Made by a program: the position numbers and the translations under genes
In this document: one piece after another, positions 5,471 to 60,664 of the stretch
How the letters are laid out: the number at the start of each line of letters is the position of its first letter
Numbering within the stretch: position 1 is the first letter of the stretch
Sequence record: PQ287642.1
Direction: 5' to 3' (one strand)
Length of the DNA: 64,000 nt
The notes under the pieces: generated by a model
What the model was told of the DNA's origin: nothing
Database searches by the model: none
What the model saw: the letters and a program-made list of their open reading frames with translations, nothing else

Positions 5471-6007
5471 TCAGCCTTGTGACTCCAGATAATAAGTGAA
5501 GAGATTTGTTGCCATTACTTGCTCAAATGGGCAAGCTCTAGTCAGCTCGCTAATCATACTATCAAAGAAAGTGTGGTTAGCCTTAATTGTGAGCCGGTCA
5601 GGATCGCTTGAACCAGTGTGCAGACTCTTCTGCACCGCAACCCAAAGATACTCATCTACAGGATAAAGGCTATAAACACTGATATAATCAGAATCATTTG
5701 CCTTACGCAGAGCCATATTGGCAATACGTTCCTCTACACGATTGTGCAATTCTTGCATCTTGAATTGATTATCGTCGTCGGAGGTTGCCTTTAGGGCGAT
5801 CCCAACAACCGGACTGTCAGCCTTCTCGATCTGAGTTCCCTGACAGAACCGGAATGGGAATTCATTAATTGCAGCGTCGATCTCCGCAAGGTCATTTACC
5901 GAGCTTACGGAAGCTATATAGTTGGGGCAGAGTAGCTTAGTAAACTGCACACCATCAGCTTTGTACTGATCATAGACTGCTTCGGGGATTACAAGTAACT
6001 TGATCAT
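5471..6007 (-). CDS. Conserved protein upstream of capsid gene (phiKZ gp119-like position)
   Basis: 178-aa ORF co-oriented with the capsid gene. Confidence 0.75.
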   Translation of the reverse strand: MIKLLVIPEAVYDQYKADGVQFTKLLCPNYIASVSSVNDLAEIDAAINEFPFRFCQGTQIEKADSPVVGIALKATSDDDNQFKMQELHNRVEERIANMALRKANDSDYISVYSLYPVDEYLWVAVQKSLHTGSSDPDRLTIKANHTFFDSMISELTRACPFEQVMATNLFTYYLESQG

Positions 6008-6093
6008 CGGGGTATTGACCTATTGTGGGACCAAGGCTATTAAGTGTCTACATAGGAATATATACTTAAATTGGTGACAAATTACTTAAGATA

Positions 6094-6118
6094 AAAATGA
6101 TACACGGTACATCATTTT
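6094..6118. promoter_or_regulatory. Inverted repeat AAAATGAT-N9-ATCATTTT in the divergent capsid/DnaB promoter region
   Basis: Perfect 8-bp arms. Confidence 0.4.
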
Positions 6119-6144
6119 AATTTTACTAAAAGGATGCGGTTCAA

Positions 6145-7683
6145 ATGTCCTCCCCAAAACAGCTTCTTGTCAGTTGCGTTACCCTGCTTTGCTTGGAGCA
6201 CCGCCCAGATTCTCCGGCCTCTCCGTCTACTGAACTAATTGATAAAATTGTTGGTTCACTTGAAATTAAAGAGACTACTGTTGATCATGATCATGGTCGA
6301 CAAACTTTTCTTGAGCTTCGTAAACTTGTTCAAGATCTCAATAAGAAAGTTAAGCACGAATTTCCAAGTATCGCTGAAGTACTACAATCTGTGCAAGTGA
6401 GCTGCCGTGAAGAGAACTATCTTTACGAAGCTGTACTAAATGGTGTTAATGAAAACTTCCCAGATGGGATGGCTATCATGCACCGGATTAACTCTTATCG
6501 TCGTTCGCTTAATGAATACATCAATGATGAAACTATTAAAGCGATTATGAAAGAGTATTCCACTAAGCTTCTGTTTAACCGTGGTGGCGGTAATGATATC
6601 GCTGGTATGATCAACGAGATGGGGGCTAAGCTCGATCCTTATGTAAAGGCTCGTGCTGAAAGTCGACATCCCGCTGAAATGGGTTGCCTTGATTTTGACA
6701 ACCCGGAAGGTGTAGAAGAATTCTTCGAAGCTGTACAAACTACTTTGTCTGCCGATGGTGCTTTCAAACTAGGTTGGAAAGGTTTCAACCGTGTATTGGG
6801 TAGCCTAGGTGCTTTCCGTCGTGGTGAGTTTATTACCACCGCAGCTCTACAACATAACTTTAAATCGTATCTGGTTATGTTACTGTTTGTACATGTCGCA
6901 TTGTTTAATAAGCCATGGATGCGTGATAAATCGAAGAAGCCTCTTCTTCTATTTGCAACCCTTGAAAACGAAATCTCTGATAACCTTCTGACTATTTACA
7001 AATACATCCGTGAAAACGAAACGGGTGAAGAAGTCATTGTCAAAGATATCGATAAACGTGAAGCTGCTGCTTATGTTTGCGCGCGCCTTGAAGAGAATGG
7101 CTTTAAAGTTAAGATGGTTCGGTTCGACCCCACTGAATTTACAATTGGTGGTTTCACTAACTATCTAGATGGTCTTCAGGGACAGGGATACGAGATTCAA
7201 TTCCTGGTAGTTGACTATCTGAACATGCTACCTAAGACAGGACTTGATGCTAAAGTAGCAGGTGACGATATTCGTCTTCTATTCCGTCGCATGCGTAACT
7301 ACACTACTCCTCGTGGTATCACTTTCATCAGCCCTCATCAGCTTGGTTCTGATGCACTGCAACTGATGCGTGAAAATACCGAGGACTTCGTTAAGGTAGT
7401 AGCGAACAAAGGTTATTACGATGGTTGTCGTCGTCTGGGTCAGGAACCTGACCTTGAGCTGTTCCACCACATCATCCGCCATAAAGGAAAAGCGTATCTC
7501 GCTATTCAACGTGGTAAACACCGTAACACTGTAACGGCAGAAGAAGACCAATATGTTCTTCTACCATTTAGTAATATCGGTACGATTCCATGGGACATTG
7601 ATAAAGAGGAAGATTATTCTCTGAAAGTTGTTCCTGGGTCTGTAATTGGCGGTGATCTCGATTCTGACGCATGGTCTATCTAA
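6145..7683 (+). CDS. dnaB: DnaB-like replicative helicase (phiKZ gp118-like)
   Basis: Degenerate Walker A region FRRGEFITTAALQHNFKS, Walker B FLVVDYLNML, FISPHQL, QRGKHR; no intein visible. Confidence 0.9.
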   Translation: MSSPKQLLVSCVTLLCLEHRPDSPASPSTELIDKIVGSLEIKETTVDHDHGRQTFLELRKLVQDLNKKVKHEFPSIAEVLQSVQVSCREENYLYEAVLNGVNENFPDGMAIMHRINSYRRSLNEYINDETIKAIMKEYSTKLLFNRGGGNDIAGMINEMGAKLDPYVKARAESRHPAEMGCLDFDNPEGVEEFFEAVQTTLSADGAFKLGWKGFNRVLGSLGAFRRGEFITTAALQHNFKSYLVMLLFVHVALFNKPWMRDKSKKPLLLFATLENEISDNLLTIYKYIRENETGEEVIVKDIDKREAAAYVCARLEENGFKVKMVRFDPTEFTIGGFTNYLDGLQGQGYEIQFLVVDYLNMLPKTGLDAKVAGDDIRLLFRRMRNYTTPRGITFISPHQLGSDALQLMRENTEDFVKVVANKGYYDGCRRLGQEPDLELFHHIIRHKGKAYLAIQRGKHRNTVTAEEDQYVLLPFSNIGTIPWDIDKEEDYSLKVVPGSVIGGDLDSDAWSI

Positions 7684-54804: not shown

Positions 54805-55401
54805 ATGAGTAAGTTTAGTGAGCTGCCGTTTAATTTGATGGATACAATACACCATCCAAAACCAACTCCTGAAGATGAAAAACGGCTCTCTGAAGCCCTT
54901 GATAAAATATTCCCCCATAATCCAAAATTGGAGCACAATCAAATGACCGCACTGTCCCCGAAAGAACAACTGGACCAAGCTGTAGAAGCTTCTGCTGTAG
55001 CAGCACAACAACTCATTAAAGAAGATGGCTGGGCCATTCTTCGCGAATTGTATCGCACTACAGCTGCTGCTCTTAATGCTACTTCCATTGTTATCATTCC
55101 GGCGCTGGAGCGTCGTGAAGAAATTCTGAGTAAACTCAGTGATCCTGAAGGTTTCTCTAAAGATCTGCAAAACTGCATGTCTGATATTGAACAGATGATC
55201 AGTGCTCTGGAAGCTCTTAGTATTCTTCACGTAAACAAAACTGGTACACCTGATCTGGCTGATCTCGATCAAATCGGTAAGCTGACTTTGGGTTACGCAA
55301 ATCTCCAACATAAAGTAGAAACAGCTGTTCAACCACTGCTGATGGGTCTCATTGCTAAGATGCAAGAAGCTGGTGTTGATACTGTTTCCTTCGTGAAATA
55401 A
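54805..55401 (+). CDS. Conserved helical hypothetical protein
   Basis: TAGGAG SD; strong codon bias. Confidence 0.75.
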   Translation: MSKFSELPFNLMDTIHHPKPTPEDEKRLSEALDKIFPHNPKLEHNQMTALSPKEQLDQAVEASAVAAQQLIKEDGWAILRELYRTTAAALNATSIVIIPALERREEILSKLSDPEGFSKDLQNCMSDIEQMISALEALSILHVNKTGTPDLADLDQIGKLTLGYANLQHKVETAVQPLLMGLIAKMQEAGVDTVSFVK

Positions 55402-55412
55402 GGTAATACAAA

Positions 55413-57014
55413 ATGCAAGAGCTTGATATGGATAAAGAAGACAATTATCCTGCTGAGGGTAATTGGGAACAGCAAGCTGATGCAGAAGTAGAACAGGGGC
55501 CCACGGGTCCCACTCTACCAGACGCACCTGCGGAAGAAGTATCTTCTTCGCCTGCTGTTGAACTACCTCCACTGGTAATTGACCAGAAACCAGTTAACTT
55601 CACTGAGACACGTTCTTGTTCTAGTGAAGCTATTCCTGGTATGACCTCTTTGATGAGTTTCATTCTAGAAAACCCCAAGACCTTTAACCAGGTATTGGAA
55701 CGTCACTCGGCGCTATTGAATGGAATGCACCAAGGTGATCTCACTACTACTAGCAGTGACCGAGATTGGTTGATTTCTCTAGTAGCTGGTATGAACCATA
55801 CTAACCTTGACCCCACTCCTATCGGTGGGACGGAACGTGAAGGTTCTGTATGGCAACAAGGTATTACTGGTCATGATAACGGTAACCTTATTCGACCAGG
55901 CCGCCCTTCTCAAAAGATCGATCGTAATAAACGACACAGTAAAGAAGAACTGTTGGCATACCTCTCCAAGAAATCTGGTCTTGGTGCGACATACGAAACG
56001 TTTATGCCTCGTTCGGGTATCTGGCTTCGCCTGCGTGCTCCGACACTTACTGAAGTAGTCGCATTGCAAACAGAAATGCAGCAGATCAAGCTCCGGCTGG
56101 GAATGCAAACCAAAGGCATGTCGTTCTCTAACGCTGGTTCCGTAATGATGAACGCGATGACTGACCTGGCTCTGTCTTGTGTTATTGCATCGAACAAGTC
56201 CTTCATTACTCCAAGTGACCTGGAACATGAACTATCGATCTTTGATGAAGCTATCCTGCATCATGCCCTAGCTTCTACAATGTACATTGATGGATTCAAC
56301 TACGACGTTCCATGTATTGCAGACCCGGACAACTGTACGGCTCGTATCACTGCAAAACTTAACATGTCGTCTATCGTTTGGTTTGACAACACTGTATTCA
56401 GTAATGATCAGCGTAAATTTATAGCTAAGAAATTTGCACCTGCTACGGATGAAGACTTCAAAGCTTACCGTGAAGGTTTCGGTATTGGCGGTAAGAAAGT
56501 ATTCTGGTTTGGTGATATTGGTGTTCGTCTTGCTATCCCGACTATCGCTCAACGTAAGATGGCTGCTTCTCAGTGGTCTCAGACATTGATCGAAATGTCT
56601 CAAGGTACATTTAACGAACCGCCACATGGTGTTCAACGTTCAGCGTACATTGATAAACTGAGTAAAGCTACTATCGCCATGCAGTACGCTCATTGGGTAG
56701 ATGGTATCTATGAAAAGGACGACGATGTAGAAGACTTCGAAGATCAACTGCTTTCCGACGATCAAGAAATCATTAGTGATTATCTGGCGAACACTCTGAG
56801 TGATCCGCAGTACGCGGAGCAGTTCTTTGATACCGTACATGAGTATACTAACTCTTGTGTACTGGCTGTGGTAGCTCTTCCATCGCATAACTGCAAAGAA
56901 TGTAAAGGTCCTCAGGGCCAAGCATTCAACGAACGTTTCCCGCACCTTGTACCGCTAGACATGATGGCAATATTTTTCACGTTGGCGGGCCAGAAAGCCA
57001 AGCACCTGGAGTAA
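55413..57014 (+). CDS. T4 gp26-like baseplate-hub/tail assembly chaperone
   Basis: CIADPDNC...LNMSSI, IGVRLAIPT, LPSHNCKECKG...DMMAIFF follows the recalled T4 gp26-family layout ending in FF. Confidence 0.65.
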   Translation: MQELDMDKEDNYPAEGNWEQQADAEVEQGPTGPTLPDAPAEEVSSSPAVELPPLVIDQKPVNFTETRSCSSEAIPGMTSLMSFILENPKTFNQVLERHSALLNGMHQGDLTTTSSDRDWLISLVAGMNHTNLDPTPIGGTEREGSVWQQGITGHDNGNLIRPGRPSQKIDRNKRHSKEELLAYLSKKSGLGATYETFMPRSGIWLRLRAPTLTEVVALQTEMQQIKLRLGMQTKGMSFSNAGSVMMNAMTDLALSCVIASNKSFITPSDLEHELSIFDEAILHHALASTMYIDGFNYDVPCIADPDNCTARITAKLNMSSIVWFDNTVFSNDQRKFIAKKFAPATDEDFKAYREGFGIGGKKVFWFGDIGVRLAIPTIAQRKMAASQWSQTLIEMSQGTFNEPPHGVQRSAYIDKLSKATIAMQYAHWVDGIYEKDDDVEDFEDQLLSDDQEIISDYLANTLSDPQYAEQFFDTVHEYTNSCVLAVVALPSHNCKECKGPQGQAFNERFPHLVPLDMMAIFFTLAGQKAKHLE

Positions 57015-57052
57015 TCAACGAGGACCCCCGGCATAGTCGTCTAACAATTAAT

Positions 57053-57475
57053 TTGGAGGACGACAACGGGCACGTTACAATGAACTCTTTCGGTCGCAAG
57101 ACTGTTAATGGTAAGAGTGCATTCGATGAACTCGTGCGAACGCTAGATGCCGTAAGGCCAGCTATTGCCGAAATGTTGACCAGGAAGGCCTACCATAAAG
57201 ACTACGGTATTTTCGATCATGATTCACCAGAGGCTGATCCTTTAGATCTGGTTAGAATGCATCCTAAGGAAAACGTCGTAGAAGGTGGACCTGAAAGAAC
57301 TTGGATACGGAAGTTTGTCAATTACAAGATCAATGACATTTATGGTTTATCTTTACTAGAGTTCTTTGAACTACCCTTTAATGATTGTTTGTTCATGATT
57401 GAACTTGCAGAGTCGAAGGCTATTCAAAGTACATCGCAAGCTAGACAAATCGAGAAAGATCTTGGATTAAAATAA
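57053..57475 (+). CDS. Downstream partner of the gp26-like gene; probably the -1 frameshift extension
   Basis: Poor start context; frame open back to 56906; KINDIYGLSLLEFFELP resembles tail-chaperone T-segment motifs. Confidence 0.7.
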   Translation: MEDDNGHVTMNSFGRKTVNGKSAFDELVRTLDAVRPAIAEMLTRKAYHKDYGIFDHDSPEADPLDLVRMHPKENVVEGGPERTWIRKFVNYKINDIYGLSLLEFFELPFNDCLFMIELAESKAIQSTSQARQIEKDLGLK

Positions 57476-57485
57476 AAAAAAATAA

Positions 57486-57523
57486 AGCATAGCTCCTACC
57501 CGAAGGTAGGAGCTTTATGCCGT
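57486..57523. terminator. Bidirectional hairpin AGCTCCTACC-CGAA-GGTAGGAGCT + TTATGCCGT
   Basis: Between convergent genes. Confidence 0.85.
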
Positions 57524-59129: not shown

Positions 59130-60664
59130 TTAGTGCATGGCTATCCGTCTGAGTACCATTGAAAGAGTTTTACCGGCGAAATGCTCACTTTTATTCCGAG
59201 CATATCTCACGTGGTGCGGTATGTTTTCACACACTAGGTAGGTCAACCTAGGTACCACATCTTGGAAGTCTTTCAGTTTACGGAGACGACCCAGAATTTG
59301 AATGTTATCTTTCTTGGAATCGGTAGCTTGTAACAATACTACCTCACGAAGATTAGGGATGTCTACACCTGTACCAGATGACTTAATAGTGGACACCGTA
59401 ATGTCGTTCTTAAGTAACTGTTCATAACTGCAACCTGAGACATGTCCGTTAACCACAAGGTCAGGGAACTTAGTCTTCAGATATTTAACCAGTTTTTCAA
59501 TAAAGGCGACCGTTGCACAAAGGAGGAGTAGTTTCTGACCAGGTAACCGATCTTTCACATACACGCCATCAGCAATACGACCGACCATCCTGAAATAGTC
59601 ATCCATCCGTTTAGGATCTTTCATCATTACCGTTTCGTAACGCGCATGGTTATACGTATTCTTAAACGGTGTAAGATAATCCTTCGGTTTGATCTTTGGT
59701 TCAGTGTAGAGTAGCCCCATGCAGTTGATGTAGACATCGTAGTTGGGCAGGCGACACATGGTCTCTGCTGGCAACATCTTGTCAATCATCTTCGTCACGT
59801 AGGCGTTCCCTGTGTAGGGAGTAGCCGACAAATAGATCTGCTTATTAATGTTAGAGTAAATATCGATACGGAAGGTTAGTCCTGGATCTTCTTGAATCTC
59901 GTCGTTAATTTGCAGTCCTGCTTGTATTGCTTCGTGGAACCGGGGTGGAGGTACATTGTATCCGAGCTCATGGAGTCGGTTACCATACTTCTCAAAGTTA
60001 TCTAGATATGCCCGGTAGGTAGTAGAAGAGATTACAATAACGTCAATCCCTTCAAGATCGTTTTCGACGCCGCGATCTATTAGTTTTTGGAGTTCTGCGG
60101 AACCCGAGATGGTAATGTATCTCTGGGCAATGTCCTTGTAAGTGTTCTGAAGAGCCTCAATCCAAATACCAAAATACTTGGGAGGAACCATCACAACACA
60201 TCTTACCCCCATCGAAGCCAAGGACGCTAGGCTCGTGAGGGTTTTCCCTTTCCCGTTTGCAAGTCTACCCGTGCAGAATGTAACCAATCACGCAAAATAT
60301 CTTCACGGATGATTTCCTGATAATCCCGGAGTACGTATTTCTCGTACATTTCGTAAACAGCAATTGCTGCTTTAGGGACAGGGATATCCTCAATCTCGAC
60401 TCGTTCTCTTGGGATACCTTTGTTCTCCAGATAACCGATCAGGTCTTCTAGTGAATTTCGGTGGATATAAGTCTCTGATAGATCTTCGAAACAACCATAG
60501 TACTTTTTCTTGAGTTCCATGATGATTCGATTACCAGGGATCTTCTTAGGTTCTTTCAAAGAAAGCCCTTCAAGAAACCCCTGCATCTTAGCGAACGTTT
60601 CCCGAGTATACCCAGATAGTCGGACACCATGCGTATAGCGCTCAGCCTTGAGTATCGGTAGCAT
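59130..60664 (-). CDS. SF2 helicase (phiKZ gp75-like) encoded in two frames joined by a -1 shift at 60242-60254
   Basis: Upstream ORF ends ...LRDYQ...DLQTGKGKPSRA*; the -1 frame continues GKGKTLTSL...INDEIQE...LSATP...SSGTGVDIPNL...QILGRLR (motifs I-VI). Joined length 511 aa. Confidence 0.8.

Follow-up and report, generated by a model that had tools for sequence, protein, structure and literature searches.

A conserved T-run and an almost certain -1 frameshift in a core gene (phiKZ gp77 family) of nucleus-forming jumbo phages

The gp77-like gene and its overlapping -1 frame

The window analysed here (the whole 64,000-nucleotide stretch of DNA from sequence record PQ287642.1) includes a gene homologous to phiKZ gp77, an upstream co-oriented gene, and a downstream ORF annotated in GenBank as a separate small CDS (Table 1). 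The gp77-like ORF ends ...DMMAIFFTLAGQKAKHLE*, and carries close to its 3' end two consecutive Phe codons in a run of Ts, in a zone where the -1 frame is also open. Slipping back one base at these codons would give a trans-frame product of 522 + 165 = 687 aa, with the junction ...AIFF/HVGGPESQAPGVINEDPR (predicted junction peptide, AIFFHVGGPESQAPGVINEDPR). An earlier note, made from the sequence alone, had proposed this -1 shift, and the ORFs, the heptamer, the open -1 frame and the complementary arms of a proposed pseudoknot were all confirmed, with one small correction: the next ATG of the downstream ORF is at 57080, not at 57077 as the note had it.

Table 1 Coordinates of the features at the gp77-like locus (positions in the window).
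Position	Strand	Feature	Observations
54805-55401	+	Upstream co-oriented ORF, 198 aa	phiKZ gp78 homologue, phrog_14050; ends 11 nt before the gp77-like start, so probably in the same transcription unit
55413-57014	+	Zero-frame ORF, 533 aa (short form)	Homologue of phiKZ gp77 / 201phi2-1 gp136 / PhiPA3 gp074 / Goslar gp081, Chimalliviridae core gene cg18; phrog_4585 (E 1e-156); four invariant Cys (C301, C308, C494, C497) and invariant F521 F522 T523 L524
56906-57014	+	Overlap zone	Zero frame and -1 frame both open
56970-56978		ATA TTT TTC	Codons for I-F-F
56972-56978	+	Shift site A_TTT_TTC	On the Phe521-Phe522 codons (TTT TTC, 56973-56978); contains the tetramer U_UU.C
56978-57011		Dual-coding stretch
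56978-57475	+	-1 frame extension, 165 codons plus stop	phrog_12109; joined to residue 522 in the 687-aa long form; stop at 57473-57475
56978-57079		5' third of the extension	Upstream of the annotated ATG
56982-57009	+	Proposed H-type pseudoknot	S1 56982-86/56997-57001; S2 56990-93/57006-09; complementary, but not supported as a conserved element
57012-57014	+	TAA stop of the short form	11 codons after the shift site
57053		TTG	Alternative start chosen in the ORF listing
57055-57059		GGAGG	20 nt upstream of the annotated ATG (poor spacing)
57080-57082	+	ATG annotated as the start of the downstream CDS in GenBank records, including the identical record	Probably only an internal Met35 of the extension
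57491-57514	.	10-bp G+C-rich hairpin between convergent genes	Likely bidirectional terminator closing the gp78-gp77-extension unit

Conservation of the frame relation and of the shift site

The comparison of 40 loci from the family showed that the downstream ORF is in the -1 frame in 39 of them. The relation was found in 24 of 25 GenBank loci (phages of Pseudomonas, Erwinia, Salmonella, Serratia, Klebsiella, Ralstonia, Xanthomonas, Vibrio, E. coli and Halocynthia) and in 16 of 16 readable IMG/VR loci. The exception, RTH11, has a T-run one base shorter than its relative LucasX. The -1 frame was open across the gp77 stop in all loci, with 49-196 nt of overlap, while the gaps from the gp77 stop to the annotated start ranged from -136 to +218 nt and the annotated starts were a mix of ATG, TTG and GTG. 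Among 32 non-redundant relatives, this -1 relation has a probability of about 1e-15 if frames were random.

The shift site N_TTT_TTY, with a T-run of 5-8, sits on the invariant Phe-Phe; relatives carry T_TTT_TTT, T_TTT_TTC, G_TTT_TTY or A_TTT_TTT. The heptamer is perfect in about half of the lineages, and the U_UU.Y tetramer is present in all. The first Phe codon was TTT in every locus that has FF, although TTT is the minority Phe codon in most of these genes (6-67% of the other Phe codons); given the Phe codon usage of each gene, the combined probability is about 1e-15. The range of positions that would permit a shift, common to all loci, is about 12 codons and contains the T-run. U_UU.C and U_UU.U are the best -1 tetramers in E. 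coli after A_AA.G, and U_UU.U_UU.Y heptamers shift without stimulators and are used by IS elements (PMC4066793).

Interestingly, the -1 frame is under protein-coding selection upstream of any start codon. The first ATG/GTG/TTG in the -1 frame after the site is at codon 85 in phiKZ, 68 in L036 (L numbers denote the loci compared), 56 in Phabio and 51-52 in PCH45, Moabite and L038, yet the residues before those codons are conserved, including invariant PE, D, SRL, H and FG (P5, E6, D16, S20, R21, L22 and H32 lie before the annotated start in the window). Codon-position identity in the stretch annotated as intergenic was 0.59/0.68/0.37, compared to 0.55/0.66/0.33 in the rest of the extension, whereas in the dual-coding stretch all three codon positions were about equally conserved (0.55/0.61/0.52). 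None of the 150 best family representatives is an in-frame fusion, and every match ends within about 28 residues of the C-terminus of the protein. The extra length of homologues of 613-705 aa (those labelled P0066, P0068, P0069 and P0075; SPLA1a, Asesino and probably phiEaH2) was N-terminal, and they keep the -1 arrangement.

There was no downstream structure signal. The 70 nt after the site fold no better than shuffled sequences (z +0.72 in the window; mean z -0.23 over 35 loci). The H-type pseudoknot proposed in the earlier note was checked column by column in 21 ungapped relatives of the clade and is not conserved: S2 pairs fully in only 4 of 21, and S1 is partly kept, but its arms are fixed by two overlapping reading frames. 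No SD-like motif was seen upstream of the site in the sequences inspected. A stimulatory element is not obligatory, and lambda G/GT probably lacks one.

Interpretation, alternative explanations and predicted function

A programmed -1 frameshift giving 533-aa and 687-aa forms is therefore strongly supported, although by sequence comparison and without direct protein or RNA evidence. In the explanation we favour (rough probability 0.85), the gene makes two proteins from one start: most ribosomes release the short form, and a minority slip back one base on the Phe-Phe codons (Phe-tRNA on UUC re-pairs with UUU, and the P-site Phe-tRNA re-pairs with AUU at two of three positions, the heptamer of the window being imperfect at the P site) and read the -1 frame to its stop. 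We infer that the event is ribosomal rather than transcriptional; that its efficiency is low and needs no strong RNA stimulator; that the two forms act together at a set ratio; and that the protein is a non-virion assembly factor of the T4 gp26/gp51 (baseplate-hub assembly) type, the extension being an adaptor domain that folds on a partner. The extension is currently mis-annotated in the Chimalliviridae genomes examined, where it is variously called as a short ORF with an arbitrary start, truncated to half (phiKZ 76.4) or not called at all, and it is absent from the published core-gene list that we searched, in which cg18 itself is listed as 'hypothetical'. No annotation or paper reporting this frameshift was found; mentions of 'gp77' in the Goslar, PCH45 and PhiPA3 papers refer to unrelated genes under the numbering of those phages. 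More than 1,600 protein clusters belong to the family. The finding adds a deep, well-sampled natural example of a U-rich shift site without an evident stimulator, and gives a testable handle on a conserved protein of unknown function in a phage family studied for the phage nucleus and considered for therapy.

The same fused protein could arise by transcriptional slippage, if the phage RNA polymerase added one U to a fraction of the mRNAs. T-runs of 7-8 occur in 18 of 32 non-redundant loci, UUUUUUU is avoided in E. coli genes, plausibly because of slippage (PMC4066793), and the one-T difference between the RTH11 and LucasX records shows that the run is length-unstable at some level; slippage may contribute where the run is T7-8. 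As the sole mechanism it is unlikely, since five independent lineages, including the genus of the window, have only T5, probably well below the run lengths that make bacterial or T7 RNA polymerases slip, and what is conserved is the codon register NTT_TTY and not the run length (L032 keeps only GTT TTT). Even less likely is that these are two ordinary genes, the downstream ORF being translated from ATG 57080, TTG 57053 or a non-canonical start, perhaps coupled to termination of gp77, and the -1 relation being a relic of an ancestral ATGA/TAATG overlap. GenBank annotators call it a separate CDS, 201phi2-1 and RP12 have overlap-type junctions that automatically give the -1 frame, and an internal start may additionally yield a shorter C-terminal product in some phages. 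However, no canonical start exists for 50-85 codons in six lineages, conserved residues and coding periodicity extend upstream of every annotated start back to the T-run, the annotated starts are heterogeneous, the GGAGG of the window is poorly spaced, and the stop-to-start gaps vary by more than 300 nt while the frame is kept.

The function is inferred. The AF2 model of the gp77-like protein (pLDDT 84) matched, in a Foldseek search of BFVD, more than 10 predicted structures named baseplate hub subunit or T4-like hub assembly protein (E 5e-5 to 1e-3; probability 1.0; TM, normalised by the target, 0.5-0.63), and these were its only annotated structural neighbours; the label 'gp26-like' used in the earlier note is thus supported at the (predicted) fold level only. 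The profile-profile match to a PF12322 alignment was weak (hhalign probability 34%, P 4e-4, over 60 columns around CxxC), and hhalign to single T4 gp26 or gp51 sequences was insignificant (about 2%). Pfam and NCBIfam gave no hit, PHROGs returned only phrogs of unknown function, and neither an HMM search against PDB sequences nor Foldseek against PDB found anything. The extension folds poorly on its own in AF2 (pLDDT 59), and its hhalign comparison with PF12322 was negative, ruling out the idea that the frameshift splits a gp51-like domain in two. As indirect evidence on virion content, the 201phi2-1 record does not mark gp135 or gp136 as found by virion mass spectrometry, whereas it does mark gp138 and gp139, and Goslar gp81 and gp82 are not mentioned in the main text of the virion structure paper. 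It remains possible that the recoding is real but that the protein is not a tail or baseplate assembly factor, acting instead in another conserved process of nucleus-forming phages (for example, handling of head or ejected proteins next to gp79/gp80, or an early function), with the extension as a regulatory or localisation domain: the gene sits in a conserved block with the gp79 head protein and a virion RNA polymerase subunit gene, far from annotated tail genes, and the Churi homologue was listed among proteins detected early in infection. Against this stand the predicted structural neighbours and the four-Cys site, which PF12322 proteins also carry. More tentatively, cg18 of all nucleus-forming jumbo phages might be a giant, T4 gp26/gp51-related hub/tail assembly chaperone whose two forms are set by a G/GT-style -1 frameshift, the extension being the missing adaptor that couples the hub or tape measure to tube polymerisation; this would link the T4-type hub assembly catalysts and the lambda-type frameshifted chaperones as one functional class, and add an overlooked conserved domain to the Chimalliviridae core proteome.

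Comparison with known frameshifted and hub assembly genes

As in the IS-element orfA/orfAB frameshifts on U-rich motifs, and probably in T7 gene 10A/10B, the shift occurs on UUU/UUC Phe codons near the end of the upstream frame, giving a minor C-terminally extended form, and U_UU.U_UU.C is used by IS elements (PMC4066793). The protein families and functions differ, and IS elements usually add a downstream hairpin or pseudoknot and an upstream SD-like element, neither of which is conserved here.

T4 gp26 and gp51 (PF12322, T4_baseplate) share with the gp77-like protein the predicted structural resemblance and four conserved Cys (the profile match around a CxxC motif is weak and inconclusive), and T4 gene 26 also gives two products, gp26 and the internally initiated gp26'. 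However, the Pfam HMM did not hit the window protein or any of 46 family members (no hit at E<=1), although T4 gp26 and gp51 themselves score 216 and 178 bits; gp77 is twice as long; and the T4 genes sit next to the hub and tape-measure genes, have no frameshift, and the two gp26 forms share a C-terminus.

The earlier note had likened the pair to the tail assembly chaperones lambda G/GT and P2 E/E+E', and this function remains an inference, plausible but unproven. Compared with the G/GT type (Xu, Hendrix and Duda 2004), the upstream protein is 533 aa rather than about 140 aa, there is no significant fold match to TAC models (Foldseek E 0.6-1.5), the slippery motif is U-rich (N_UUU_UUY) rather than G_GGA_AAG, and the gene is not between the tube and tape-measure genes, its neighbours being the gp78 and gp79 homologues, RNA polymerase subunits, a helicase and a DNA polymerase. 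The finding suggests that setting the ratio of two chaperone forms by frameshifting may also operate in giant contractile-tailed phages, in a protein related in predicted fold to T4 gp26/gp51, whose own mechanism is still unclear. As in lambda and P2, the -1 shift lies a few codons before the stop of the upstream ORF, the trans-frame extension is of about 150 residues, no strong RNA stimulator is evident, both forms are evidently kept by selection, and the arrangement is conserved across a whole phage group even though the sequences diverge (PMC5009743).

Gene pair and frame relation across related loci

The window is a Pawinskivirus-type Pseudomonas jumbo phage, 100% identical to HHBS36_1 over this stretch and 99.5-99.7% identical to PA1C, PS119XW and BRkr; these phages carry the split multisubunit RNA polymerases typical of nucleus-forming phages. 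The arrangement described in the earlier note was confirmed: the upstream ORF encodes 533 aa ending ...DMMAIFFTLAGQKAKHLE*, the -1 frame is open around its stop, and a shift after Phe522 gives ...AIFF-HVGGPESQAPGVINEDPRHSRL..., 687 aa in total. The only correction to these details concerns the first ATG of the downstream frame, which the earlier note had placed at 57077; it is at 57080, 20 nt after GGAGG, a poor spacing for a ribosome-binding site, and is the start used in GenBank records. An A-rich tract (AAAAAAAATAAA) followed by a perfect 10-bp hairpin, a likely bidirectional intrinsic terminator, lies between the convergent gene sets.

Coordinates of the features analysed
Feature	Record or locus	Position	Strand
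Zero-frame ORF (533 aa)	window	55413-57014	
Residues 1-47 of the 533-aa protein	window	55413-55553	
Codons ATA TTT TTC	window	56970-56978	
Open -1 frame	window	56906-57475	
GGAGG	window	57055-59	
First ATG of the downstream frame	window	57080	
A-rich tract and 10-bp hairpin	window	57476-57515	
RAD2/SF2-type DNA helicase region	window	59130-60664	-
Heptamer G_GGA_AAG	window	60254-60248	-
Heptamer G_GGA_AAA	window	60248-60242	-
Stretch with T7 at the shift site	L011 (Xanthomonas phage RTH11)	2962-2970	
Corresponding stretch with T8	L012 (LucasX)	2773-2782	
Conserved extension, including PHIKZ076.4	L005 (phiKZ)	3066-3563	
Gene 26, nested products gp26 and gp26'	L043 (T4)	5803-6429	-

The 533-aa protein is the homologue of phiKZ gp77, 201phi2-1 gp136, PhiPA3 gp074, EL gp47 and Goslar gp081; it is core gene cg18 of the Chimalliviridae, listed as a hypothetical protein. 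The downstream frame corresponds to phrog_12109, the homologue of 201phi2-1 gp135 and PhiPA3 gp073, and the PHROG profile already aligns to residues upstream of the ATG. In phiKZ only the C-terminal 80 codons of this frame are annotated (PHIKZ076.4), and many phiKZ-type records annotate nothing, or two fragments, over this stretch.

We next compared the gene pair in 24 annotated loci from the phage collection, making 25 GenBank-type loci together with the window (phages of Pseudomonas, Erwinia, Salmonella, Serratia, Klebsiella, Ralstonia, Xanthomonas, Vibrio, E. coli and Halocynthia), and in 17 IMG/VR loci, 16 of which were readable. The downstream ORF was in the -1 frame in every locus except RTH11, although the annotated gap between the two genes ranges from -136 to +218 nt and the annotated start codons are a mixture of ATG, TTG and GTG. 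In every -1 locus the -1 frame is open across the gp77 stop, with 49-196 nt of overlap. For 32 non-redundant loci, the chance of one shared frame is about 1e-15. Interestingly, RTH11 has seven Ts where its relative LucasX has eight, and this single base accounts for its aberrant 627-aa ORF and its apparent '+1' relation; the difference, located exactly at the proposed shift site, is either a homopolymer sequencing error or a real length instability of the run.

No GenBank record examined joins the two ORFs, full-text searches found no report of a frameshift in phiKZ-like phages, and the recoding review consulted (PMC5009743) does not mention these phages. The number of the downstream ORF of RAY (gp266) does not occur in the supplementary tables of the core-genome paper that lists cg18. 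Programmed -1 frameshifts giving C-terminally extended phage proteins are already known; what appears to be new here is a family-wide, unannotated case, inferred from sequence comparison, that gives a functional lead.

The proposed shift site and the coding signature of the -1 frame

The loci carry N_TTT_TTY on a Phe-Phe pair that is invariant in a 46-sequence alignment (F521 F522 T523 L524), with the exception of locus L032, which has GTT TTT (Val-Phe). A perfect T_TTT_TTT or T_TTT_TTC is found in phiKZ, 201phi2-1, Goslar, RAY, RP12, RSF1, PCH45, Moabite, Eowyn, SA002, LucasX, the SPN3US-like phages, JM-2012 and others; A_TTT_TTY in the window's genus and in D6/Psa21; and G_TTT_TTY in the Noxifer, PhiPA3 and Phabio lineages. 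T-run lengths are 5 to 8. The first Phe codon is always TTT, although TTT makes up only 6-67% (typically about 30%) of the other Phe codons in the same genes (combined probability about 1e-15). In ten or more loci, stops in the -1 frame lie only 4-6 codons upstream of the site, and in several loci the zero-frame stop lies 8 codons downstream; consequently, the interval in which a shift could occur in all phages is about 12 codons, and it contains the T-run.

The conservation of the -1 frame indicates that it is translated from the site and not from a start codon. After the site, the first ATG/GTG/TTG in the -1 frame is at codon 85 in phiKZ, codon 68 in locus L036, codon 56 in Phabio, and codons 51-52 in PCH45, Moabite and locus L038. 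Yet the residues before those codons are conserved: in a 15-sequence alignment at 39-56% identity, P5, E6, D16, S20, R21, L22, H32, F38 and G39 are invariant, and in the window all of them except F38 and G39 lie before the annotated ATG. Codon-position identity across 20 relatives (positions 1/2/3) was 0.59/0.68/0.37 between the gp77 stop and the window's ATG and 0.55/0.66/0.33 in the rest of the extension, the same third-position wobble, which is a coding signature in the -1 frame. In the 12 dual-coded codons the values were 0.55/0.61/0.52, all three positions being about equally conserved, as expected when two frames are both constrained.

Both forms seem to be needed. Among the 150 best of 1,649 family clusters, every match ends within about 28 residues of the protein's C-terminus, and none is an in-frame fusion; longer homologues are extended at the N-terminus. 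The N-terminal 47 or so residues of the window's protein are acidic, Pro-rich and predicted to be disordered (pLDDT <50), and across the family this is the region of large length variation, with N-terminal extensions of up to about 170 aa.

Mechanism and alternative explanations

U_UU.C and U_UU.U are the most shift-prone tetramers in E. coli after A_AA.G, and U_UU.U_UU.Y heptamers shift detectably without stimulators and are used by IS elements (PMC4066793). The window's site is a perfect U_UU.C tetramer inside an imperfect heptamer; after the slip, the P-site Phe-tRNA would re-pair with AUU at two of three positions. No stimulator was found. The 70 nt downstream fold no better than shuffled sequence (window z +0.72; mean -0.23 over 35 loci). 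The H-type pseudoknot proposed in the earlier note was not supported: its stem 2 pairs fully in only 4 of 21 relatives, whereas stem 1 is partly retained, but its arms encode Leu-Ala / Val-Gly and Lys-Ala / Ser-Gln in the two frames, and its conservation therefore cannot be credited to RNA structure; its 3-nt spacer would also be unusually short. A low-efficiency shift without a stimulator, as probably occurs in lambda G/GT, is the simplest reading. In the predicted structure the FF pair lies inside the last helix (517-530), and the long form therefore replaces the end of that helix by Gly-Gly-Pro-Glu-Ser and continues into the extension.

Transcriptional slippage could contribute where the run is T7-8, but it cannot be the general mechanism if the T5 lineages, including this phage, make the long form, and we consider it unlikely as the main mechanism; either way the protein product is the same. 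If only the long form mattered, in-frame fusions should exist, and if only separate proteins mattered, the frame and the start should drift, and neither is seen.

Interestingly, the window contains what may be a second, species-specific compensatory frameshift, or a tolerated split gene. The RAD2/SF2-type DNA helicase (phiKZ gp75 homologue) is a single ORF of about 510 aa in HPP-Temi, PhiPA3, 201phi2-1 and others, but in this phage species it is split into a 145-aa ORF and a second ORF in the -1 frame (385 aa if counted from its TTG), owing to a 1-nt deletion inside the Walker A motif (ACA GGT AAA GGA AAG ACC becomes ACG GG- AAA GGG AAA ACC). All seven near-identical isolates with annotation show two CDS. 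The deletion creates the classical shifty heptamer G_GGA_AAG (lambda's G/GT motif) in the upstream frame, and a -1 slip there would restore ...QTGKGKTLT..., the intact Walker A.

Predicted function and comparison with known systems

Searches of Pfam, NCBIfam and the PDB with the sequence or its profile returned no match, and a confident AF2 model (pLDDT 84, pTM 0.83) had no match among solved structures. In BFVD, beyond the Chimalliviridae homologues, the model matches a series of proteins of about 250 aa named baseplate hub subunit, T4-like baseplate hub assembly protein, or hub assembly chaperone (E 5e-5 to 1e-3, probability 1.0, TM 0.5-0.63 normalised by the target). T4 gp26 and gp51 both belong to that family, PF12322. 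Comparison of profiles of the gp77 family and a gp51/gp26 alignment gave a probability of 34% and P 4e-4 over 60 columns around a CxxC motif, and both families have four conserved Cys. So the 'gp26-like' label of the earlier note is supported at the level of the predicted fold, but membership of PF12322 is not established. The extension has no detectable relatives of known function and shows no similarity to PF12322; it folds poorly alone, with only the last 60 residues, which are helical, predicted confidently, and its conserved but unmodelled N-terminal 100 residues suggest that it folds on a partner.

The remaining evidence on function is circumstantial. In favour of an assembly role, the 201phi2-1 record marks gp138 and gp139, but not gp135 or gp136, as found by virion mass spectrometry, and Goslar gp81 and gp82 are not mentioned in the main text of the virion structure paper. 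Against a late tail role, the gene lies in a conserved block with the gp79 head protein and a virion RNA polymerase subunit gene, not with tail genes, and the Churi homologue was among the proteins detected early in infection. The baseplate/tail assembly-chaperone reading remains tentative, with at best an even chance of being correct.

The system works like lambda G/GT in its geometry: the shift lies a few codons before the stop, the extension is about 150-170 residues, no strong stimulator is evident, and both forms seem to be kept. However, it fails two defining features of that family, namely the position between the tube and tape-measure genes and a small upstream protein with the TAC fold. 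It resembles T4 gp26/gp51 in predicted fold, but not at the level of the Pfam model. T4 has no frameshift there, although its gene 26 does make two nested products, gp26 (208 aa) and gp26' (95 aa), by internal initiation at an in-frame start, a loose parallel in that the gp26/gp51 family also makes two forms by another route.
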